A stretch of 64,000 nt of DNA from the sequence record NC_023568.1; one strand, given 5' to 3'. The position numbers and the translations under genes are program-made. Each line of letters starts with the position of its first letter. Position 1 is the stretch's first letter. Below the pieces are notes generated by a model. The model was not told the origin of the DNA. It did no database searches and worked only from the letters and a program-made list of their open reading frames with translations. Below are positions 28,944-38,664 of the stretch, in pieces.

Positions 28944-29969
28944 ATGTCACACGCAATCTTTATCGGACGCTTTCGTCCATTCCACAACGGTCATCTATCT
29001 GCAATCACACAAGCATTCGACGCGCTTGACCTAGACAAGATGACTATCTTAATCGGTAGCTCTAATCGACATCGTTCAGTTAAAAACCCTTTCACGTTCG
29101 AAGAAGTACGCGATATGATGGGTGTTGCTTTACCTGACGATATTCGAAGCAAAGTTCGCTTTGTACCACTAGGTGATTACGCGAAAGACGACGTTTGGCA
29201 GTCAAATGTTCGTGCTAGTACGAAAGGCGCCACTCACATCGTTGGTTACGACAAAGACGAAAGCAGCTACTATCTCAAGCTATTCCCTGAGCTAAAACTA
29301 TTTCAACCTGAACCAGTGAAGATGTATAACAGAGTTATCTCTGCAACTGACTTCAGAGAACTGTACTTCAGCGAGATTCTACTGAATCACCCTGTAATGT
29401 CTGGTCTGATTCCCAAGCAAACAATGATGTTTCTTGACGATTGGAGCAAAACAGAGCATTTCACTGAAATGAAAGCTGAATACGATAGCTCAGTGCGCGA
29501 AATCGAGAAGTTTAAAGATTATCCCTACCAAGGTCACTTGAATATCGCGTGTGCTGACAGCGTTGTGATGTGTGCAGGTCATGTTCTTCTTGTCGAGCGT
29601 AAGTTCAACCCAGGCAAAGGCTGTTTAGCATTACCTGGCGGTCATAAGCATGAGAAAGAAACATTCTTAACTGCTGCGATTCGTGAACTACAAGAAGAAA
29701 CTAACATCAAAGTCCCAGAGAAAGTCTTGCGTGGCTCGCTCAAAGATGAGAAGATGTTCGATAACCCAAATCGCTCTTACCCACACACTCGCATCACAAT
29801 GGCATATCACTTCAAAGTGCAGCCAAACCCTGACAACACTTTCCCGAAAGTGAAACCAGCCGATGATGCTGTGTCTGCAAAATGGTATTCGTTGAGCGAA
29901 GTAATGGACATGCAAGAACGTTTGTATGACGATCACTACCAAATCATTCAGTATTTCACTGGCATCTAA
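28944..29969 (+). CDS. natV: bifunctional NMN adenylyltransferase/ADP-ribose pyrophosphatase (NadM-Nudix)
   Basis: GRFRPFHNGH, ISATDFR; Nudix box G...E.....A.RELQEET. Confidence 0.9.
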   Translation: MSHAIFIGRFRPFHNGHLSAITQAFDALDLDKMTILIGSSNRHRSVKNPFTFEEVRDMMGVALPDDIRSKVRFVPLGDYAKDDVWQSNVRASTKGATHIVGYDKDESSYYLKLFPELKLFQPEPVKMYNRVISATDFRELYFSEILLNHPVMSGLIPKQTMMFLDDWSKTEHFTEMKAEYDSSVREIEKFKDYPYQGHLNIACADSVVMCAGHVLLVERKFNPGKGCLALPGGHKHEKETFLTAAIRELQEETNIKVPEKVLRGSLKDEKMFDNPNRSYPHTRITMAYHFKVQPNPDNTFPKVKPADDAVSAKWYSLSEVMDMQERLYDDHYQIIQYFTGI

Positions 29970-30626: not shown

Positions 30627-31253
30627 ATGCACGCATATGACTTAGTAAGAAAAATGCAAAAGGTTGTTGAGTCTTGCGAGACAATTGAACAACTACGCAA
30701 TGCAAGAAAGTACCTCATGCGCTGTCAAGACTATGCACTCGATGGTGGCAATGATAGCTACATCACTACTATCATGGTTGAAGTTCAAGACCTCGATGAG
30801 CGAATCACAAATAAGATTGTTGAGCTTTCTGATACTCGTGGCATGAACGCTATCGAAACTGGTGTTATCAAAGTCGGCATCGATATTCATGGCGTAATTG
30901 ATCAATCACCAGAGTTCTTCGCGCTGTTAAGCAAACTACCAGTTGAAGTGCATATCATCACTGGCATTAAAGAAGAACTCGATACTGATGTACCAGATGA
31001 CTTAGAATATGATCACTGGTTTAGCATTCATCAATCATGTGAAGACGACGGCGTTGAAATCTTGTACGACGAGAAAGGTCGCCCATGGGTCGATGACGAA
31101 ATCTGGAACAACAAGAAAGCTGAATACTGCCGTGAGAATCAAATCAATATCATGATCGATGACTCACCAACGTATGCTAGATCCTTCGAAGGTCTTGATA
31201 CTTTCTATCTACAACTAACCAATACTGTTCGTGATGAATGGAGACGCAAATGA
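30627..31253 (+). CDS. HAD-like phosphatase domain protein
   Basis: GIDIHGVID, IITG, K...C, MIDDSP in C-terminal half. Confidence 0.6.
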   Translation: MHAYDLVRKMQKVVESCETIEQLRNARKYLMRCQDYALDGGNDSYITTIMVEVQDLDERITNKIVELSDTRGMNAIETGVIKVGIDIHGVIDQSPEFFALLSKLPVEVHIITGIKEELDTDVPDDLEYDHWFSIHQSCEDDGVEILYDEKGRPWVDDEIWNNKKAEYCRENQINIMIDDSPTYARSFEGLDTFYLQLTNTVRDEWRRK

Positions 31254-31435
31254 GAAATTACGGCATTATAGACCGAGAAGGCAGATATCTACTTGTGCTA
31301 GACATTGACAATGAGATAAAAGTCATGGCAATCTTTTCTGAAATCGAAGATGCAAATCGTGTGCTGTACAAATATGATTTCGATAAGCAAGGCTTTCGCG
31401 TAATTGAACTACAACCATTGGAAAAGAAACTATGA
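31250..31435 (+). CDS. hypothetical protein
   Basis: coupled ORF. Confidence 0.55.
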   Translation: MRNYGIIDREGRYLLVLDIDNEIKVMAIFSEIEDANRVLYKYDFDKQGFRVIELQPLEKKL

Positions 31436-31647
31436 ACGTATCAAATGTAATGTCACAACACGCTGAAATTCAAGATGCACTTATTGCTATGCTCGACGAT
31501 GAGTTCAACGGCAAAGGTCATATCGAATATGCAGATTACTTCGATGACGAACAACTATGGGAAGTGCAATACTTCGATGGTGAAACAGTACAAGAAGTCA
31601 TTGTAACTACAGTCGCGCTCGAAAAATGGATGCATAATAACAAATGA
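31432..31647 (+). CDS. acidic hypothetical protein
   Basis: coupled ORF; weak similarity to next ORF. Confidence 0.6.
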   Translation: MNVSNVMSQHAEIQDALIAMLDDEFNGKGHIEYADYFDDEQLWEVQYFDGETVQEVIVTTVALEKWMHNNK

Positions 31648-31856
31648 TACATGACATTATCATCGAACATCGTCGCATCATGAACATAGTCACTGAGTTG
31701 TGCCAACTCAAATCATATGAATTCATTGATGACATCGAGTACGATGAAGACAAACAAATATTCTATGTCACTATCGCTGAAGAAACTCAAAACGGCACTG
31801 AATACATAGAATGTAAAATCACTCTGCAACTAGTAGAAAACTACTATAAGGCTTGA
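31644..31856 (+). CDS. acidic hypothetical protein
   Basis: coupled ORF. Confidence 0.6.
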   Translation: MIHDIIIEHRRIMNIVTELCQLKSYEFIDDIEYDEDKQIFYVTIAEETQNGTEYIECKITLQLVENYYKA

Positions 31857-32031
31857 CAATGAAATTACCAGAATACTTACAACACATCAAAGTAAACGAA
31901 AACGTAATTACAGTAGACTCAGCACGCGATAAAGCTTTGGTCATCGATTACCTACAATCAATCAAAGCACGATTCCATACTGTACAAAAGACAGTTAGCC
32001 GCTGCGAAATTCACGTCAAGAGAGCTTAATC

Positions 32032-32391
32032 ATGAAAGAACTACTTAAAACAATGAAAGAAACTGAAGAAGCCATCGCAGCGAAGTTTGGTCTAGACCAT
32101 CTATGGCACGGACTAGTAGACTGCACCGATGTGCTATTCACATGCGATCTAGTAACTGACGACGTGAAAGACATGCATACCGTCATTAATCAAATACGTG
32201 AGTTCCAATACGGCTTTGAAGACGCTAATGCATTAGAAGAAGGCGATTGCTATGCAGTAGAAGTTTACGGCACAAGCGTGTGGCTATCAACTGATAACAA
32301 ATACATGTTGACTACTGCCGATGACGGTAGTGGCAATAGAGACTTCTATATCTTCGATATGAATAATCTCAGATCATATGAATTATATTAA
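32032..32391 (+). CDS. hypothetical protein
   Basis: 119 aa ORF. Confidence 0.65.
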   Translation: MKELLKTMKETEEAIAAKFGLDHLWHGLVDCTDVLFTCDLVTDDVKDMHTVINQIREFQYGFEDANALEEGDCYAVEVYGTSVWLSTDNKYMLTTADDGSGNRDFYIFDMNNLRSYELY

Positions 32392-32393
32392 AG

Positions 32394-32463
32394 AAAAGGG
32401 TTGACAGTTGTCAGCCCTTTCGCGTATCATACACATATCAAATCAAGAAAGGAAAACATTATG
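32394..32463 (+). promoter_or_regulatory. terminator hairpin fused to early promoter (PeSL-like)
   Basis: AAAAGGGTTGACA-GT-TGTCAGCCCTTT then TATCAT. Confidence 0.75.
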
Positions 32464-32634
32464 ATTGGACTATCTATTATCATCGCAGTATTCAGCGTCG
32501 TGCTAATGATAGACTCACACGAGCAAATCATGTCTAAAGAATACAGAAACTTTGTCTTGATATTCAATGCCATTTGCTGTATAGTCAATCTAGCTAACAT
32601 GATTGTGATTCACAAATACGGAGTAACACTATGA
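32461..32634 (+). CDS. small membrane protein
   Basis: two hydrophobic stretches; AAGGA RBS. Confidence 0.6.
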   Translation: MIGLSIIIAVFSVVLMIDSHEQIMSKEYRNFVLIFNAICCIVNLANMIVIHKYGVTL

Positions 32635-32795
32635 GCTTGACAATACTACTAATGACACTTCTATGCTGTGCAATACTCACTGGCATGAGTATCTTCAGCT
32701 TCATTAACAAACCTAGATTCGTGAAACTAGTAATCACTGCTGTTCTAGGCTTTGTCTCGTATGTTCTACTACACGTAACGGCAGGCGCAATATGA
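32631..32795 (+). CDS. small membrane protein (54 aa)
   Basis: read manually; two hydrophobic stretches, coupled on both sides. Confidence 0.55.
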   Translation: MSLTILLMTLLCCAILTGMSIFSFINKPRFVKLVITAVLGFVSYVLLHVTAGAI

Positions 32796-33007
32796 ATCAA
32801 ACTATCAAAGCAATATGCATAGACAATACTTCAACTCGTATCGATAAACCAGAACCACCAAGCGGCATTACTCTAGGCAAAGAATATGTCGTTCACATGT
32901 ATAACGTAAACGAACATACAAATAAACCACCTATGATTCGTATTACTAATGACAACAACCAACGAGCAAGCTATGTCGCTGCACGCTTTAATCTATCAAT
33001 AGGATAA
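32792..33007 (+). CDS. hypothetical protein
   Basis: 71 aa coupled ORF. Confidence 0.6.
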   Translation: MNQTIKAICIDNTSTRIDKPEPPSGITLGKEYVVHMYNVNEHTNKPPMIRITNDNNQRASYVAARFNLSIG

Positions 33008-33011
33008 ACTC

Positions 33012-33179
33012 ATGTTCGCACTATCAATCTTAATTCTGATTCTCACTACATATCTGTTTGTAACCGATAAATCAAAACGAACAGTTCCATTCGTGGCTCT
33101 GCTAATAACAACTGCGTTTAACTGTATCATTCAGTATTACCTAATTGATATTCTATCATTGAGCTTTAAACTATCGTAA
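33012..33179 (+). CDS. small membrane protein (55 aa)
   Basis: read manually; AGGA RBS; hydrophobic. Confidence 0.5.
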   Translation: MFALSILILILTTYLFVTDKSKRTVPFVALLITTAFNCIIQYYLIDILSLSFKLS

Positions 33180-33295
33180 TGCAAACACTAATCAATCTAC
33201 TAAACGATATACCTATCGGCTACCTCATGCTTGTTCTATGTGCTCTAGCAGCTATAGCCGGTTGGTGCCTGAGCGATATATCAAACGATGACTAA
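33179..33295 (+). CDS. small membrane peptide (38 aa)
   Basis: read manually; TAATG overlap; one TM. Confidence 0.45.
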   Translation: MQTLINLLNDIPIGYLMLVLCALAAIAGWCLSDISNDD

Positions 33296-33386
33296 AAACG
33301 CTTAGAATCGCTCTCACAGCGTCTCAGAGCATGGTACAGATACGATTGTTTTTAATATATCGCACCATGCCTCGTTTAAATGCACA

Positions 33387-33495
33387 TGTGTATAAATCTG
33401 TGGATAATATGTGTATGAGATTGTGCATAAGTGTCTGAAATCTGTGTATAAAAACATGATTTAGCTGTGCATAAGTCTGTGGATAATGTGGATAA
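33387..33495 (+). repeat. array of eight co-oriented DnaA boxes
   Basis: TGTGNATAA at 33387, 33399, 33422, 33443, 33466, 33478, 33487 and TGTGTATGA at 33410. Confidence 0.85.
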
Positions 33496-33602
33496 CTTTT
33501 TAGTGAAAAAATGGTGAAAGACTCATCGGCTCCTGTGTGGTACGCGGCAGTCTAAAACCTTACACCATTTATGAAAATCTAATTCGCTTCGCATCTTCTT
33601 GC

Positions 33603-33632
33603 TTGACAGCCAGCGGCATTATGTGAGAGAAT
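33603..33632 (+). promoter_or_regulatory. sigma70-type promoter
   Basis: TTGACA-N18-GAGAAT with TG extension. Confidence 0.5.
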
Positions 33633-33665
33633 GCAAAGAGATTTGAACTGCCTACGGAGGTAATT

Positions 33666-33812
33666 GTGATTACATTGGCGTTATTTTATATGAGTCGCGA
33701 CATGCAATACAGCGAGCGACCAAGTGACTTGTACCTTGGTACATGTATTTTAGACTTTGCATTAATCGCCACGATGTTCTGTGGTGTAATGATGTTCACT
33801 GGTAATTGGTAA
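33666..33812 (+). CDS. small membrane peptide (48 aa)
   Basis: read manually; GGAGG RBS, GTG start, TAATG overlap with next gene. Confidence 0.5.
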   Translation: MITLALFYMSRDMQYSERPSDLYLGTCILDFALIATMFCGVMMFTGNW

Positions 33813-34135
33813 TGTTGTTTAAGAATTACAGAGTGAATCGCCATGTTCGTGCTCGTGCTATAGAGTTATTGAATTGTGGTGAGTTGCATCGCGTGTATAC
33901 TTGTTTAGAGTTACATCGTGGTGTGAGTGACGAGATGGTTAGTTTGATTAAGCTTAAACTAAAGCATTTGCAGCGTATGTACGTACGGCAGAGTGATTTG
34001 CCGAATGATTTAGAAGATTGTTATTCTTTTATCTGTGCGTATCACCCGCCTTGTGAACATCGTAAGTTGCGTGAATATGAGCGTAAGTCGTGGTTGAAAT
34101 ACATCATAGAGAACATTAATAAGGTAAAGATATGA
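33812..34135 (+). CDS. hypothetical protein, YTC/RxxWL family
   Basis: RAIELL...YTC and RKSWLKYI motifs. Confidence 0.6.
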   Translation: MLFKNYRVNRHVRARAIELLNCGELHRVYTCLELHRGVSDEMVSLIKLKLKHLQRMYVRQSDLPNDLEDCYSFICAYHPPCEHRKLREYERKSWLKYIIENINKVKI

Positions 34136-34440
34136 AGAAGTACCGATTGGGTAATTTGTTGCGTGGTGGTTGGTCTGGTGAGTTTGCCAGTTTAGAAGAG
34201 GCGTGGGTTCAGTTAGGTTCGCGTTTTCTACTATCATTTCCGTGTGAGAAATGGGAGAAAGACATTGGTATGTCTATCAATGAAGATGGTGGTCGTACTG
34301 TGTATATGTATGTTCAAGAAGAGAACAAGTATGGTCAATTAGATTGGGCTTGTTGTAAGAACGGTGTGTTCTATATGAACGAACGAGTGCCAGTAACGGC
34401 AGACGATTACAAGCGTTGCAGTGATGTAGAATTTTTCTAA
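34132..34440 (+). CDS. hypothetical protein
   Basis: coupled ORF. Confidence 0.65.
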   Translation: MKKYRLGNLLRGGWSGEFASLEEAWVQLGSRFLLSFPCEKWEKDIGMSINEDGGRTVYMYVQEENKYGQLDWACCKNGVFYMNERVPVTADDYKRCSDVEFF

Positions 34441-34450
34441 GGGTTATAAG

Positions 34451-35059
34451 ATGAAACGAATTGAAAGACATAAGAAAGTAGTAGACAAGAAAGCGATTAT
34501 GCCGAGCGGTAGTATGGTACGAGTTGAGACGTACTACAACACATGGTCTGGTTATTTGAATTGCCTTGACTCGGGTGATGGTATACGTGGTATAGAGCAA
34601 CCGACTTATATGCTAGTATCTGACAATGGTGCTTTTTACTCAGTTGAAGAAGATAAAGTAAATGGTAACAAGCAGACACAGACAAAATACGATGGTCAGT
34701 TGGTACTTGTACATGCTCGATTGAAGTTGTCAGCGAAAGATTGGGATTGGTACCCTTGTAAGTGGAAGAGTGGTCGTCTTGTATATGCGTATAAAGAAAC
34801 TGATTTTGTCGATGAAGAGCACGAGCTAGTTGTCGGTGAGATACTAGACATTTATGCCGCAAGCGATAGTACATCGTCATATGCACATGACGCGACAGTT
34901 GTTGTATCACGTCCGACACAAATTGCTGTTGAGACGTATGGTAAACTAGTAGTGTTTACGGTTGGTTCTGATACAGATGAACTCGTATCTGATTGTGGTG
35001 ATTATCGTATTGATGGTCGATATGCTGCTAGTCAGTACGATGAAGAGCTTCATTCGTAA
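34451..35059 (+). CDS. hypothetical protein
   Basis: 202 aa ORF. Confidence 0.65.
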   Translation: MKRIERHKKVVDKKAIMPSGSMVRVETYYNTWSGYLNCLDSGDGIRGIEQPTYMLVSDNGAFYSVEEDKVNGNKQTQTKYDGQLVLVHARLKLSAKDWDWYPCKWKSGRLVYAYKETDFVDEEHELVVGEILDIYAASDSTSSYAHDATVVVSRPTQIAVETYGKLVVFTVGSDTDELVSDCGDYRIDGRYAASQYDEELHS

Positions 35060-35068
35060 AAGTTAAAG

Positions 35069-35096
35069 AAAAGGGTTGCGCTATGCAGCCCTTTTT
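35069..35096 (+). repeat. 28-bp direct repeat, left copy (hairpin plus -35)
   Basis: AAAAGGGTTGCGCTATGCAGCCCTTTTT, identical at 36050-36077. Confidence 0.95.
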
Positions 35097-35128
35097 TATA
35101 TTCTACAGTTTTTGAATTGGAGGATAAT

Positions 35129-36043
35129 ATGACTAGAATTAAATGGACACCTGAACGTCTTAAAGAAGATGCATTGAAATACAAGACTCGTACTGAATGG
35201 TGTAAAAACTCAAGTGGAGCGTACAATGCTGCTCGAAACCGTGGTTTATTAGATGAGTGTTGTGCTCATATGAAGTCAAGTCAGAGACCAAACGGATTTT
35301 GGAATTTAGAAACACTTCAAGAAGATGCATCCAAGTATAATTCTCGTTCTGAATGGGAGAAACGGTCTAGAAGTGCATATTATGCTGCTCAAAGGCGTGG
35401 TTTATTAGATGAGTGTTGTGCTCATATGAAGCCATCGACTAAAACGTTGATTAATCGTTGTATATACCGAATCTATGCTGGCAACGAGATTTACATTGGT
35501 CTAACTTATGATGTTGATGTTCGTTTCCGTGAACATAAAACAAAAACAAAGAAAATTATCAAGTTGATTGAGCGTCATGGTATTGATAATGTGAAGTTCG
35601 AGCAAATAACTGATTACATGGACCAAGAACTCGCTCAGATTGCTGAGGCAGAACACATAGAGAGTTATAGAAACAATGATTGGGTTATTTTAAACCGTGC
35701 AAAAGCTGGGGCGTTAGGGAAAGCTAGATTGAAATGGAATTTAGAAACACTTCAAGAAGATGCATCCAAGTATAATTCTCGTTCTGAATGGGAGAAACGG
35801 TCTAGAAGTGCATATTACATCGCTCAGAAAAGAGGTCTCCTTGATGAGTGCTGTGCTCATATGACACGATTGAAAAGACCAAACGGATTTTGGAATTTAG
35901 AAACACTTAAAGAAGATGCATCCGTTTACAAGACTCGTAATGAATGGCGAACAAAATCAAGTAATGCTTATAGCGCAGCTAAGCGACTGGGATTAATTGA
36001 TGAGTGCTGCGGTCATATGCCGAAAAGAGCCAAGCGAAAATAA
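35129..36043 (+). mobile_element. free-standing GIY-YIG homing endonuclease with repeated DNA-binding modules
   Basis: CIYRIY..NEIYIGLT..V..RF.EH core plus E and N motifs; four W..E.L.EDA..Y..R.EW...S..AY..A...GL.DECC.HM modules. Confidence 0.85.
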
Positions 36044-36049
36044 TTTAAT

Positions 36050-36124
36050 AAAAGGGTTGCGCTATGCAGCCCTTTTTAGTATTATAGCTTTATCGAAACG
36101 ACAACGACTAGAGAGAATATTATG
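36050..36124 (+). promoter_or_regulatory. PeSL-like cassette containing right copy of the 28-bp repeat
   Basis: hairpin, TTGCGC-N17-TATTAT, ATCGAAACGA, GAGAGAATATTATG. Confidence 0.85.
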
Positions 36125-36443: not shown

Positions 36444-36851
36444 ATGAAAATTCTACCAGATTTCCTTGATAACACTGAAATTCGCCGTGTAATTAGCGAA
36501 AAAGCACTGGAATTACGTCAAAATACCGCGATTTTAAGCGATGAAGACGCTTACACGTGTCATATTTTAGATGATCACGTCGAAATCAAGCTTGGCGTTC
36601 TTGCTCAACAAAAAGCTATGCGTATCATTAAAGATAAAGGCGAAGCTTTCTGTGACCATCTACAAGCTAATCCTGAAGCTGTATTTGGTCGTGAATTGAC
36701 TTCAACTGAAGCTGAATATCTCAACGAGATTTTTCAAAACAAGCTTAGTGCATTTGTACATAGCGTATCGCGTGTATTTGAAGATGCCGATGATATTGAT
36801 TTTGTATTTGTGCGTAAAGCATGGTTAAAATTCTTGATTAATTCACTATAA
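36444..36851 (+). CDS. hypothetical protein, YTC/RxxWL family
   Basis: AYTCHI and RKAWLKFL. Confidence 0.7.
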   Translation: MKILPDFLDNTEIRRVISEKALELRQNTAILSDEDAYTCHILDDHVEIKLGVLAQQKAMRIIKDKGEAFCDHLQANPEAVFGRELTSTEAEYLNEIFQNKLSAFVHSVSRVFEDADDIDFVFVRKAWLKFLINSL

Positions 36852-36866
36852 AAGCAAAAAAAAGTA

Positions 36867-36941
36867 CAAAAAGTGGTTGCGTGATGTAGCCACTTACTGT
36901 ATTATTCTCTTATCGAAACGAGATACAGAGAGAACATTATG
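36867..36941 (+). promoter_or_regulatory. PeSL-like cassette
   Basis: AAGTGGTTGC-GTGAT-GTAGCCACTT, TATTAT, ATCGAAACGAGATACAGAGAGAACATTATG. Confidence 0.8.
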
Positions 36942-37112
36942 ACTTACGCAAACGCTACTAAAATCGACGCAATTGAACTTGTTATGTCAATGACAGAAGA
37001 CCAGTTCTACGACCTTATTGCTGAATCAAATGCAAATGATGATTACGCGTTTTCTGCAAAAGTCATGAAAGCTCAATCTGACTTACGTCGCGCTGGTAAA
37101 ATTAACTACTAA
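36939..37112 (+). CDS. hypothetical early protein (57 aa)
   Basis: read manually after cassette RBS. Confidence 0.6.
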   Translation: MTYANATKIDAIELVMSMTEDQFYDLIAESNANDDYAFSAKVMKAQSDLRRAGKINY

Positions 37113-37173
37113 GTGCTTGACACTTCCACCAGCAATAGCCGATAATAGCTTTATTGAAACGAGAGAGAACATT

Positions 37174-37425
37174 ATGAACTTAATCACACGCAGCAAAATC
37201 AATCACGATTCACTTTGGCTTAAAATCTTGACTGCTGATAAGAGCGAAGTAAAGCTATTCATCGGTCGTACTGGTGTTAAAATCAGTCACAAAACGACTG
37301 CTGCTTCAGCTAATGTTATGCGTGAAGTCGCGAACAACGTAAACAAAATGTTCAATGAGCTATACAAGAGCGGTTTGCCTTACGGTCAAATCATCGAGAA
37401 AATTGAAGCAGCTTACAAGGGATAA
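37174..37425 (+). CDS. hypothetical early protein
   Basis: start after TTGACA..GATAAT promoter and GAGAGAGAACATTATG. Confidence 0.7.
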   Translation: MNLITRSKINHDSLWLKILTADKSEVKLFIGRTGVKISHKTTAASANVMREVANNVNKMFNELYKSGLPYGQIIEKIEAAYKG

Positions 37426-37428
37426 GAT

Positions 37429-37863
37429 ATGAGAGCAATTGAGAAATCAGAAATCATCAAAGAAATTCGCGCAATGGCTACTGAAATGTCTAATGACAAT
37501 GCTTTGCTTGCAGATTCTTACGAGTATAGCTGTTGTACTGTCGTGAATCGTGTTTCAGATTTGTTTGAAGCTCGATATGACTTGTCGAAAAGAGAAAAAG
37601 CAAGACTTTATGCACCATGTAATGAACATGTAGAAGAAGCAGGTCTTGAGTTTGTTAAAACTGTCATTGCAGACTCTTACGGTGTACTTGGTTTTATTCT
37701 ACCAGAAGATACAATCGATGAACTACAAGACGATTTTGATTGGGGTCTAGCAGGTGCTTTTGTACACGCGATTGCTCGTGCATACGGGCCGTTGAATAAA
37801 GAACATTTCGTAGCAGCACGTAAAGCATGGTTGAAATTCTTGTCACAGTACGAGGGAAAGTAA
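37429..37863 (+). CDS. hypothetical protein, YTC/RxxWL family
   Basis: EYSCC and ARKAWLKFL. Confidence 0.7.
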   Translation: MRAIEKSEIIKEIRAMATEMSNDNALLADSYEYSCCTVVNRVSDLFEARYDLSKREKARLYAPCNEHVEEAGLEFVKTVIADSYGVLGFILPEDTIDELQDDFDWGLAGAFVHAIARAYGPLNKEHFVAARKAWLKFLSQYEGK

Positions 37864-37864
37864 A

Positions 37865-38242
37865 ATGAATCTACACGAACTCATTCGCCAAGCCGCGTCT
37901 GATTTACTTGAAGATGACATCACTTCAAACATCAATAGCTATACGTGCAATCGCATTGTTGATCTTATCGACGATAGCAGTGATTACACTTATAGCGAAG
38001 TTAAAGCAGTTATTCGTGAACTCGCTAAGTCGTTCTTATATGCAGTATTGCGCAATCCCGTCGAAACACTTGGCTTTGAGCTAGAAGAGGCATCACGCTC
38101 TGAACTCAAGTGGATCATGGCTGATTCTTTCTTCTCATCTGCGTTCATTCACGTGATTTCTATGCGCGGTAAAGAAATTGATTTTGAATGTTTCGTAGCG
38201 GCTCGTAAAGCATGGCTGAAACATATCGTGGAGAATGTGTAA
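37865..38242 (+). CDS. hypothetical protein, YTC/RxxWL family
   Basis: SYTCNRI and ARKAWLKHI. Confidence 0.7.
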   Translation: MNLHELIRQAASDLLEDDITSNINSYTCNRIVDLIDDSSDYTYSEVKAVIRELAKSFLYAVLRNPVETLGFELEEASRSELKWIMADSFFSSAFIHVISMRGKEIDFECFVAARKAWLKHIVENV

Positions 38243-38664
38243 TGAAACATCTAAGTGAAATCAAAGTAGCTGCTGCTGAACTGCTAGAAGATGGTGATAT
38301 TTTAACGGATATGTACGGCTATACGTGTAATGAAATTGCGTTTCTTGTACGTTCTACAAAAGATGTAATGGAAAAATATTCGTCTTACGTTGACGTGAAA
38401 AACACGTTATCCGAGATTGCAGCGCCTTTTGTTAAGCGAGTTTATGACAATGCATTACAAGGCAAAATCGACTTGTCTGAAGCAGCACTGTCTAAGCTTA
38501 AAGCCTGTCTAAACGTCGATTATTACCGCGGTACGTTTATTCACGATATTGCTATTCAAGACAATGGCAAAGTAGATTTAGAGCTATTTACTGAATATCG
38601 TCGCCAATGGCTAGAGTTTATCTTGACTCAGCCGAGTGAACATGAAAATCAAAGAAAGGTATAA
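38242..38664 (+). CDS. hypothetical protein, YTC/RxxWL family
   Basis: GYTCNEI and RRQWLEFI. Confidence 0.7.
   Translation: MKHLSEIKVAAAELLEDGDILTDMYGYTCNEIAFLVRSTKDVMEKYSSYVDVKNTLSEIAAPFVKRVYDNALQGKIDLSEAALSKLKACLNVDYYRGTFIHDIAIQDNGKVDLELFTEYRRQWLEFILTQPSEHENQRKV

Follow-up and report, generated by a model that had tools for sequence, protein, structure and literature searches.

Organization of the gap and its flanks

The window, a 64,000-nucleotide stretch of record NC_023568.1, comes from Vibrio phage VH7D, a T4-like, KVP40-like phage with a genome of 246,964 bp. Within it a noncoding gap separates two groups of genes, and every ORF and annotated CDS on either side lies on the + strand, as the preliminary description had stated. 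The left arm (31432-33295) comprises nine small co-oriented ORFs: 31432-31647, 31644-31856, 31859-32029, 32032-32391, 32461-32634, 32631-32795, 32792-33007, 33012-33179, and 33179-33295. Within it, a + strand hairpin of the AAGGGTTG..CAGCCCTT family with a weak T-run (32395-32420; -16.4 kcal/mol, z = -5.25) contains a TTGACA promoter match at 32401; at the orthologous position nt-1 and VH1_2019 have clear terminators. No + strand intrinsic terminator was found between the left arm and the gap.

The gap itself holds three features. The first is a conserved noncoding element at 33349-33376, a T-run and AT stretch followed by CGCACCATGCCTCG (33361-33374), which served as the anchor for our cross-phage skew profiles. 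It is near-invariant in VH7D, KVP40, VH1_2019, and QD01, recognizable in D484 and F86, and degenerate in nt-1; beyond the phage family, IMG/VR yielded chance matches only. Adjoining it on the right are seven DnaA-box-like 9-mers on the - strand (33387-33495), three perfect TTATCCACA and four with one mismatch, all in a single orientation and spaced 12-23-21-23-12-9 nt. This array is the sole cluster in the 247-kb genome and contains three of its five perfect boxes (chance probability ~3e-10). Arrays also occur in the ValKK3/phi-Grn1/XZ1/phi-ST2 group, QD01, nt-1, and F86, the last with five boxes in mixed orientation. In KVP40, VH1_2019, and D484, where a segment of ~120 bp differs, no DnaA boxes were found. 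The third feature is a predicted sigma-70-type promoter (33603-33632, + strand; TTGACA, 18 nt, TGn-GAGAAT), whose sequence pattern suggests that it acts as an early promoter. Its hexamers are invariant in VH7D, KVP40, VH1_2019, and QD01, and the pattern likewise anchors phi-Grn1, XZ1, and ValKK3. We found no conserved leftward promoter at the gap (a candidate at 33647-33618 reaches only a 9/12 match) and, between 26 and 40 kb, not a single minus-strand terminator.

The right arm (33666-35059, + strand) is a predicted four-gene early operon of 1.45 kb from the promoter at 33603 to the terminator at 35073, consisting of a gene for a 48-aa membrane protein (33666-33812) and genes at 33812-34135, 34132-34440, and 34451-35059. 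It is closed by intrinsic terminator T1 (35073-35097, + strand; stem of 8-12 bp plus T-run, -18.2 kcal/mol, z = -5.5). Orthologous terminators lie 3′ of the 202-aa gene in KVP40, QD01, nt-1, F86, and ValKK3, and the skew falls there. Between T1 and an identical terminator, T2 (36054-36077, + strand), sits a GIY-YIG homing-endonuclease-like gene with internal repeats (35129-36043, + strand; Pfam PF01541 and homing-endonuclease PHROGs), which is missing from ValKK3 and varies in length among relatives. The region is an insertion hotspot, as seen from this gene and from an extra ORF in phi-Grn1.

A local flip in skew at synonymous sites

The two arms differ sharply in strand composition. The hand counts of the preliminary description proved exact: 68 C to 37 G at 32941-33240 (skew -0.295) and 80 G to 39 C at 33781-34080 (skew +0.345). 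Transcription direction does not account for the difference, as had been argued there, since both flanks are co-oriented. Among 300-bp windows across the 64 kb, the lowest and the highest skew fall on opposite sides of the gap. A genome-wide scan of 2-kb-versus-2-kb steps, corrected for gene orientation, has its maximum at 33387, the first DnaA box; this step of 293 (SD = 47) stands at 6.2 SD, and the runner-up reaches half of it (146). At the level of genes, the GC3-skew step across the gap (+0.74 to +0.82) is the largest of 186 same-strand boundaries (SD = 0.16; next independent step, 0.26). When 376 ORFs are ranked by GC3 skew, genes left of the gap occupy ranks 1, 2, 5, 10, and 11 from the lowest, and genes right of it ranks 376, 374, and 370.

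The C-rich arm spans ~31.4-33.3 kb (1.5-2 kb) with a weak tail reaching ~29 kb (~4.5 kb), and the G-rich arm 33.67-35.10 kb, with a weaker positive skew extended by the GIY-YIG gene to 36.08 kb. Far from the gap on both sides the + strand is G-rich (+0.05 to +0.15), and the skew is back at this common background within 2-4 kb either way. The "GC-skew inversion" reported earlier is thus a real flip, but a local excursion and not an inversion of the background. Whole-genome cumulative skew climbs from 0 to 4940 and drops solely in minus-strand gene blocks; neither raw nor strand-corrected does it have a minimum at 33.4 kb, which, taken to the letter, is the outcome that the preliminary description had set against its own proposal of an origin. 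The flip is a ±2-kb local footprint, not a replichore boundary, and the gap is therefore a testable origin candidate, no more.

The flip is present at synonymous sites. On the coding strand of the left arm, C and A are abundant and G and T scarce: GC3 skew is -0.31 to -0.70 in seven of eight scored ORFs, with positive AT3 skew, and 0.00 in the 55-aa ORF at 33012-33179 (the ninth, at 33179-33295, is shorter than the ORF length cut-off and went unscored). Four-fold sites carry A.48, C.19, G.08, and T.25, versus.31/.11/.16/.42 in the genome (P = 7e-12); NNR codons end in A in 88% of cases versus 69% (P = 7e-5), and CTA, GTA, TCA, AAA, GAA, and CAA are strongly preferred. In the right arm, the coding (nontemplate) strand has abundant G and T and scarce C, with GC3 skews of +0.56, +0.41, and +0.34 and AT3 skews of -0.46, -0.29, and -0.22. 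Here 29% of NNY codons end in C versus 49% in the genome (P = 4e-5), and 42% of NNR codons end in A versus 69% (P = 1.5e-6); C makes up 4% of four-fold sites versus 11%, although at strictly four-fold sites the right arm departs from the genome only modestly (P = 0.034). The GIY-YIG gene has a GC3 skew of +0.28 and a four-fold skew (0.22) close to the genome background, and no other GC3 step in the genome is as strongly negative as the one just after it (-0.63), at 36043-36122, at T2.

Amino acid composition, which the preliminary description had proposed as a control, does not explain the flip, since the skew persists at third-codon and four-fold sites. The arms are mirror images: in the right arm NNY codons shift to T and NNR codons to G, and in the left arm NNR codons shift to A and four-fold sites gain A and C and lose G and T, so that the - strand on the left bears the signature that the + strand shows on the right (C down, T and G up). 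Highly expressed structural genes shift NNY codons to C, opposite to the right arm; both arms lie off the codon-optimality axis of such genes, and codon optimization was rejected as the cause. What diverges from this conserved regulatory gap is a real strand asymmetry, specific to the locus and seated in synonymous sites.

Maintenance of the flip across lineages

At the anchor, skew steps from about -0.4 to about +0.4 in all six lineages compared, down to 27%-41% protein identity. Synonymous sites are saturated at this distance, so the skew must be maintained; from these sequence comparisons we conclude that the flip is under active maintenance and bound to its locus. Most left-arm genes have syntenic homologs in KVP40, QD01, nt-1, D484, and F86 that are likewise negative in skew. 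At the right-arm position, nonhomologous lineage-specific genes in nt-1, F86, and D484 also have positive GC3 skew, and a homolog of the 202-aa gene in phage 1.081.O, in a gapless context, has none. The right-hand skew coincides with a promoter-to-terminator unit in all lineages examined except D484, in which no terminator was found after the unit; in VH7D, phi-Grn1, XZ1, and VH1_2019 the homing-endonuclease gene carries it, weaker, past the unit. The limits of the right arm, beginning at a promoter and stopping at a terminator, are a property of a transcription unit and not of fork direction.

KVP40, VH1_2019, and D484 have the flip without DnaA boxes, so flip and boxes are not mutually dependent, and the skew does not lend the box array the independent support as an origin that had been claimed for it. 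Recent divergence in the right arm shows a twofold per-site excess of C>T (17/160) over G>A (15/292; P = 0.035), with balanced substitution fluxes that indicate a steady state. In the left arm the asymmetry should be reversed, but the polarized substitutions, small in number, give no sign of this (C>T 11/331, G>A 7/294; P = 0.63). Among close relatives, the right block and gap diverge two to five times faster than the flanks.

Candidate explanations and known systems

Our best reading, tentative and at somewhat less than an even chance, is that single strands are recurrently exposed in both directions from the gap, which would fit an R-loop-primed origin of the T4 oriE/oriF kind with lineage-variable DnaA boxes. 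Repeated exposure leading to C-to-T and A-to-G deamination would be the most economical mechanism, the exposed strand being + to the right and - to the left. An early transcript would form a persistent R-loop, bounded by the terminator, and prime rightward synthesis; a delayed retrograde fork would keep the - strand exposed on the left. The DnaA-box array would not cause the skew; it would be an accessory that varies among lineages and serves in DnaA-assisted opening, in tethering, or as a roadblock. GC skew is known to predispose to R-loop formation (PMC3787257). We infer that single strands are exposed, that an R-loop forms, and that replication may start at the gap; the searched literature holds no replication, transcription, or R-loop data for the KVP40-like family. 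With G+C at only ~40%, R-loop proneness is not evident from the sequence, and four-fold sites in the left arm also have a purine excess that transitions alone are insufficient to explain. An asymmetry set by fork direction would be expected to run past a terminator and to persist beyond 2-4 kb, so the R-loop origin works only if something further is assumed, be it long-lived R-loops, abortive initiation, or lagging-strand synthesis that is delayed.

Almost as probable is a cause that acts purely in transcription or on the mRNA. It would make the right arm an exceptionally strongly transcribed immediate-early operon, whose nontemplate strand gains C-to-T and A-to-G changes or whose mRNA is selected to be G/U-rich and C-poor (Rho-resistant), with no role for replication; we consider this possible, if on the unlikely side. 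The C/A-rich, G-poor left arm would then stem from antisense transcription starting at the gap or from selection that keeps the RNA upstream of the gap unstructured, C>G, and Rho-sensitive, the gap itself having no intrinsic terminator. The match of right-hand skew to the transcription unit speaks for such a cause, as do the acquisition of this skew by genes inserted in the unit, the absence of a + strand intrinsic terminator from the left arm to the gap, and the dispensability of the DnaA boxes. However, sense transcription should skew both sides alike and the left arm is of opposite sign, and antisense transcription finds neither a conserved leftward promoter nor a minus-strand terminator. 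Among 27 intergenic sigma-70-like matches, the 26 others are followed by no general rise in GC3 skew (downstream mean, -0.036; genome, -0.043), so the right unit would have to be unique.

Translational selection on codon usage peculiar to the two gene sets, with their juxtaposition at the gap incidental, is improbable. The left arm might, for example, be tuned to the A-ending codons of phage tRNAs, as its codon preferences would allow, and the right arm be deliberately nonoptimal; GC3 skew does track expression class (-0.34 in the major capsid gene, with NNY shifted to C in structural genes), and the pattern is conserved along with syntenic genes. Yet the deviation is mirror-image in every degeneracy class and off the optimal/nonoptimal axis, nonhomologous genes of the right unit are skewed alike while a homolog outside the context is unskewed, and only chance would have brought the two most extreme clusters of the genome together at one gap.

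We give still less credence to the gap as the principal DnaA-dependent bidirectional origin, with ordinary leading/lagging (replichore) asymmetry. GC and AT (keto) skew both have the correct sign, a phased and genome-unique box array lies exactly at the flip, and nt-1, QD01, and F86 have arrays in the same gap. The rule by which a C-rich to G-rich switch marks a bidirectional origin, as invoked in the preliminary description, thus fits in sign (left C/A-rich, right G/T-rich), but it holds for replichore-scale skew; here the positive background returns within 2-4 kb both ways, there is no global cumulative minimum, three lineages flip without boxes, and the right arm stops at a terminator. T4-type phages, moreover, load their own helicase and initiate mostly by recombination, and a DnaA-dependent origin has not been described for them (PMC3016281); for the conserved eight-box array of T5-like phages, the proposed role is in injection arrest and not in replication (bioRxiv 10.1101/866236). 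Of the "local, frequently fired origin" suggested earlier, the locality of the skew stands, and the origin, for which precedent is lacking, is possible only. Finally, a compositional relic of two horizontally acquired cassettes with donor composition is highly improbable and largely refuted by conservation: despite the moron-like architecture of the right unit (own promoter and terminator), the insertion hotspot, and the faster divergence of right block and gap, a relic would have decayed in six lineages with saturated synonymous sites, the right-arm fluxes show no erosion, and differing lineage-specific genes of the unit share the skew.

Among known systems, T4 oriE has an early promoter together with 12-nt iterons at even intervals (PMC3016281). 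VH7D, also of the T4 family, resembles it in having a predicted host-RNA-polymerase early promoter beside phased short direct repeats in a noncoding stretch, here 9-mers spaced 9-23 nt, with 12 nt given for three adjacent pairs. The VH7D repeats, however, are host DnaA-box consensus sites instead of T4 iterons; their flanks are co-oriented, whereas at T4 oriE transcription diverges. Nor is the locus syntenic with T4 oriE (repEA/repEB), a homolog of a T4 repEA-segC-region gene lying at 130.5 kb.

ColE1 RNA II priming follows the same transcript-priming logic as an R-loop origin. T4 oriF(uvsY) and oriG(34) are such origins: a promoter transcript stays hybridized, displaces the nontemplate strand, and primes the leading strand, with the second fork following later (PMC3016281). 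The C-depleted nontemplate strand of VH7D, limited to transcript length, would fit such a displaced strand. Unlike VH7D, with its early-type promoter and 1.45-kb footprint, oriF and oriG have MotA-dependent middle promoters and a DNA unwinding region just 3′ of the promoter. No comparable local skew has been described for T4, the review tying skew shifts solely to transcriptional divergence.

Replichore skew of bacterial chromosomes and plasmids is similar in GC and keto sign on each side and in its persistence at synonymous sites. It differs in scale (±2 kb in VH7D) and in the cumulative minimum, found at oriC in bacteria and absent here; the synonymous amplitude in VH7D (GC3 about ±0.4) is also far above the ~2.5% given as typical in PMC8941118. 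T5-like phages carry their conserved eight-box array in an untranslated injection-stop region (bioRxiv 10.1101/866236). As in VH7D, ordered, conserved DnaA boxes lie in noncoding DNA near early genes of a virulent phage, but the phage family is another, membrane tethering and injection arrest are hypothesized, and no skew flip is reported.

In vertebrate mitochondrial DNA, strand displacement produces deamination gradients, with synonymous C-to-T and A-to-G changes proportional to exposure. Human R-loop-forming promoters and terminators resemble the right arm in their local nontemplate G>C skew tied to single-strandedness (PMC3787257). These cases are eukaryotic or organellar, and the human CpG islands are high in G+C, whereas VH7D has a G+C content of ~40% and a mirror-image arm upstream.

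Strand asymmetry around 33.4 kb in the VH7D genome

The genome of Vibrio phage VH7D (Straboviridae, Schizotequatrovirus; KC131129.1 / NC_023568, 246,964 bp) was analyzed over the whole record with running counters and numeric tracks; the window is its first 64 kb and shares its coordinates. Throughout the window the + strand is G-rich (skew of +0.05 to +0.15), in the far left and the far right alike. Around a non-coding gap at 33296-33665 the skew flips from about -0.3 over ~0.7 kb to values of up to +0.44 over ~2.4 kb; the flip is thus a local excursion from a G-rich background, extending about 2 kb to each side. The preliminary description had counted by hand 68 C and 37 G in 32941-33240 and 80 G and 39 C in 33781-34080. 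Both counts are exact, and the most negative and most positive 300-bp skew values in the 64 kb do flank the gap. Both the ORFs and the annotated CDS agree with its statement that all flanking genes lie on the + strand.

Starting at 0, cumulative GC skew reaches 4940 along the genome and drops only at 92-126 kb, at 162-179 kb, and in a few short stretches, all of them blocks of minus-strand ORFs. The skew minimum that the preliminary description expected at the gap is not there, which, taken literally, counts against its reading: over the whole VH7D genome neither track has a global minimum at 33.4 kb, the raw minimum being the record start and the strand-corrected one (mean coding-strand bias subtracted) lying at 123 kb. 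The steepest 2-kb-versus-2-kb step of the strand-corrected track is at 33387, the position of the first DnaA box (value, 293; SD, 47; runner-up, 146 in the VH7D genome).

Nearly all minus-strand genes are missing from the GenBank annotation of VH7D: 61 minus-strand ORFs turn up in a simple call exactly where the cumulative skew falls, and the unannotated blocks span 91.8-107 kb, 110-123 kb, and 164.5-179 kb of KC131129.1. Also encoded, at 28944-29969 and 72132-73625, are the two NAD salvage enzymes usual in KVP40-like phages: a bifunctional NMN adenylyltransferase/Nudix enzyme and a nicotinamide phosphoribosyltransferase.

Among 376 greedy ORFs ranked by skew, those left of the gap take ranks 1, 2, 5, 10, and 11 from the lowest, and those right of it ranks 376, 374, and 370. 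Third codon positions show the effect as strongly as the overall skew: GC3 skew is -0.31 to -0.70 in seven of the eight scored ORFs to the left, and +0.56, +0.41, +0.34, and +0.28 to the right, with AT3 skew opposite in sign to GC3 on both sides. Of 186 same-strand boundaries (SD, 0.16), the gap has the largest GC3 step, +0.74 to +0.82, compared with 0.26 for the next independent one; the largest negative step is -0.63, at 36043-36122.

In the right arm (the G-rich operon at 33.67-35.10 kb), NNY codons are shifted to T (29% C-ending vs. 49% in the genome; P = 4e-5) and NNR codons to G (42% A-ending vs. 69%; P = 1.5e-6). C makes up just 4% of four-fold sites in this arm, and at strictly four-fold sites its difference from the genome is modest (P = 0.034). 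The left arm (the small, C-rich + strand genes at ~31.4-33.3 kb) has NNR codons shifted to A (88%; P = 7e-5) and four-fold frequencies of.48 A,.19 C,.08 G, and.25 T, vs..31/.11/.16/.42 in the genome (P = 7e-12). There is a purine excess in this arm that transitions alone do not yield.

The skew is independent of gene orientation, since the flanking genes are co-oriented while GC3, four-fold, and two-fold classes all shift. The amino acid composition of the small membrane ORFs, which the preliminary description had named as a possible confounder, is ruled out as a cause: at synonymous positions (third, four-fold, and two-fold) the flip loses no strength, and it survives this control. Highly expressed structural genes shift NNY toward C (67%), opposite to the right arm, with NNR unchanged; the flip therefore does not lie on a codon-optimality axis.

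The regulatory gap and its predicted transcription unit

The gap is regulatory and conserved. Directly left of the DnaA-box array lies a conserved non-coding element at 33349-33376, with the core CGCACCATGCCTCG at 33361-33374. It is almost unchanged in KVP40, VH1_2019, and QD01 and recognizable in D484 and F86, whose neighboring proteins are 27-60% identical, and it matches none of the promoter consensus sequences tried. A search of IMG/VR for the element returned VH7D, KVP40, and chance matches only, and a protein-pattern scan of the same database returned VH7D itself alone.

The array (33387-33495) consists of seven DnaA-box-like 9-mers in one orientation, spaced by 12-23-21-23-12-9 nt. Its seven sites fall within 109 bp and include three of the five perfect ones in the genome; no other such cluster exists in the 247 kb (chance ~3e-10). 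As for an adjacent AT-rich DNA unwinding element, the runs of A+T beside the array are short (about 33349-33359 and 33496-33512), and we found no 13-mer-like repeats by the array. A conserved spacer separates it from a predicted sigma-70-type promoter (33603-33632; TTGACA, 18 nt, TGn-GAGAAT), which is invariant and forms the right end of the gap. We rejected a structured RNA in the gap: the region has no Rfam match, and the spacer hairpin at 33509-33570 is VH7D-specific and not conserved.

Several GenBank records are linearized within or beside the gap: MT612989 (R11Z), MT612988 (R10Z), ON190025 (PVA23), and ON190024 / OQ164647 / OM782678 (PVA8, PC-Liy1). R11Z is cut between window positions 33591/33592 and PVA23 between 33561/33562. 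Records cut there join seamlessly, with no repeat or loss, which speaks against a physical genome end. The linearization of several independent deposits at this place is probably a chosen start, or possibly has a physical cause (a coverage break).

Terminators were called by our own hairpin scan plus folding; a built-in terminator scan had missed obvious hairpins. Four small genes of unassigned function lie downstream from the promoter at 33603, and a strong intrinsic terminator closes the series at 35073-35097. The right arm, with its extreme skew, thus corresponds exactly to one unit from promoter to terminator; that skew, which has the sign of the non-template strand, is confined to the unit. 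The end of the arm coincides with an orthologous terminator in KVP40, QD01, nt-1, F86, and ValKK3. The same scan and folding detected no minus-strand terminator in 26-40 kb and no + strand terminator between the left arm and the gap.

The terminator belongs to a hairpin family (AAGGGTTG..CAGCCCTT plus a T-run) with three copies, at 32395-32420, 35067-35097, and 36050-36076. The first sits within the left arm, where an 11/12 promoter match at 32401, inside the hairpin, is probably spurious. The last two are identical, and between them (the second terminator proper spanning 36054-36077) lies a GIY-YIG homing-endonuclease-like gene (35129-36043), which extends the bulk skew yet has a background four-fold skew of its own. 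ValKK3 has no endonuclease gene and a single terminator. The bracketing by identical hairpins suggests that the gene is an insertion that duplicated the terminator. The phi-Grn1 record has an additional annotated 546-bp ORF that separates the DnaA array from the left arm (L009 5609-6154); together with the variable GIY-YIG gene, it suggests that the locus is an insertion hotspot.

Further right, window positions 36444-38664 hold four tandem paralogous genes (28-33% pairwise identity) with a C-terminal ..RKAWLKFL..-like motif in common. The first, the only member scanned, is phrog_4354, to which the N terminus of the right-arm gene at 33812-34135 has a weak match. Elsewhere in the VH7D genome, BLAST detected no paralogs of right-arm genes, finding only the family at 36.4-38.7 kb.

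The flip in related phages

As an anchor for placing the relatives we took either the promoter or the conserved element at 33349-33376. The flip is also present in phi-Grn1, XZ1, ValKK3, KVP40, VH1_2019, and QD01, as well as in the distant phages nt-1, D484, and F86, whose homologs of a 202-aa protein are 64%, 41%, and 27% identical, respectively. When six lineages are pooled, the 1.5 kb that precede the anchor have GC3 skews of about -0.45, -0.35, and -0.40, and the first kilobase past it has +0.38 and +0.41, after which the skew falls to zero by +2.5 kb. Each of the six follows this pattern. Because synonymous sites are saturated at such divergence, each lineage must maintain the asymmetry, which rules out passive inheritance.

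While the left-arm genes are mostly syntenic homologs, the right unit holds lineage-specific, non-homologous genes, all of them GC3-positive. In phage 1.081.O the homolog of the 202-aa protein lies within a gapless run of genes and has a GC3 skew of -0.01; the skew is therefore a property of the locus and not of a gene family. We can thus reject a moron or foreign-cassette relic, given that six of six lineages have retained the flip despite saturating divergence, that non-homologous genes of the unit share the skew, and that a homolog in another context lacks it.

DnaA boxes occur at the gap in the VH7D group, QD01, nt-1, and F86 (in mixed orientation in F86). They are missing in KVP40, VH1_2019, and D484, which keep the gap, the promoter, and the flip and differ only in a segment of ~120 bp. 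By these comparisons, the flip does not require the boxes. In QD01 there are, apart from the gap array, two further perfect boxes, paired ~5 kb downstream (L008 13443-13463).

Among close relatives, the right arm and the gap diverge two to five times faster than the flanks. Polarized singletons from five of these show a right-arm per-site C>T rate twice that of G>A (P = 0.035), with balanced fluxes, and no reversed C>T/G>A asymmetry in the left arm (small n). These spectra are weak evidence for the right arm and none for the left.

Candidate explanations and known origin types

The flip is unique in the genome and conserved, it lies at synonymous sites, and its two mirror-image arms diverge from a regulatory gap, the right arm being one early operon. 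On the + strand right of the gap and on the - strand left of it, C is depleted and T and G are enriched, a signature that matches the product of cytosine and adenine deamination in single-stranded DNA. Both arms could be traced to one cause if bidirectional initiation at the gap were transcript-primed, as in T4: the + strand would be exposed by an R-loop that spans the early operon and ends at its terminator, and the - strand upstream of the gap by a retrograde fork that is delayed. Long-lived or abortive intermediates would be required to account for a footprint of ±2 kb. GC skew is itself known to favor R-loops (PMC3787257). Our tentative reading, which we hold plausible but short of probable, is that a T4-kind transcript-primed origin with an R-loop lies at the gap.

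A cause in transcription or mRNA only is somewhat less plausible. It accounts well for the right arm but poorly for the left: transcription-associated asymmetry would have the same sign in all co-oriented genes, and the left arm is opposite in sign though on the + strand. Nor is there a generic effect of strong promoters. The 27 intergenic sigma-70-like promoter matches (that at 33603 included) show no trend, with a mean downstream GC3 skew of -0.036 vs. -0.043 for the genome, and the promoter at 33603 alone stands out (+0.37).

The transcript-primed origin can be extended to a fuller proposal, which we consider doubtful as a whole. In KVP40-like and related Vibrio T4-type phages, the gap would be the primary bidirectional origin, host DnaA would be recruited through the phased array in several lineages, and repeated or abortive firing would keep ~2 kb of opposite strands single-stranded on each side, leaving a mirror-image deamination footprint in synonymous sites. 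We know of no T4-type phage that recruits DnaA through a phased box array. In virulent phages, DnaA arrays may have further functions too, such as that in the injection-stop proposal for T5 (bioRxiv 10.1101/866236).

The simple DnaA-origin and replichore reading of the preliminary description is improbable, since both far flanks are G-rich, there is no cumulative minimum at the gap, and in place of a sign change sustained over tens of kilobases or more the excursion covers ~2 kb per side, which rules out a replichore switch. Its observation is confirmed and is stronger than was then apparent. Its origin interpretation is partly supported: the synonymous nature of the skew and its independence of gene orientation speak for it, and the lack of a replichore-scale switch and of a global minimum against it.

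For the KVP40-like vibriophages (Schizotequatrovirus and allied phages), the literature searched yielded neither a mapped replication origin nor R-loop or early replication-peak data, and no reports of this locus or of DnaA boxes in the group. The published "origin" calls that we found are cumulative-skew extremes only, which follow transcription (PMC5107563). In phages with transcription-dominated skew, a local C-to-G flip alone is no evidence of an origin. The gap, by combining the sharpest asymmetry step with an invariant predicted early promoter, is a concrete, conserved, and tractable candidate, to which many members add the sole DnaA-box cluster of the genome. If the origin reading is true, host DnaA would be linked to a T4-type replisome, and R-loop origins would be detectable from local synonymous-site skew, a new sequence-only signature. 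Should that reading fail, one operon and its upstream neighbor would still offer an unusually clean example from nature of a mutational or selective process that is strand-specific and confined to them.

Compared with DnaA-dependent origins of the oriC or P1 oriR type, the locus has the box cluster but not the conservation of initiator sites, three lineages being without boxes. T4 oriE comprises an early promoter plus evenly spaced repeats, and oriF and oriG work by an R-loop mechanism; T4 DNA contains hydroxymethyl-C, and the best-mapped T4 origins lie at transcriptional divergences (PMC3016281), so that skew at mapped T4 origins would make a confounded control. The VH7D array, with its phased 9-mers in one orientation spaced by 9-23 nt, resembles oriE in architecture only, its sequence being unrelated to the T4 iterons. 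The locus is also not syntenic with a mapped T4 origin: the VH7D homolog of a gene from the T4 repEA-segC region is at 130.5 kb rather than near 33 kb. The most fitting description of the flip is a variant of known strand-asymmetry phenomena, one that marks a good origin candidate.
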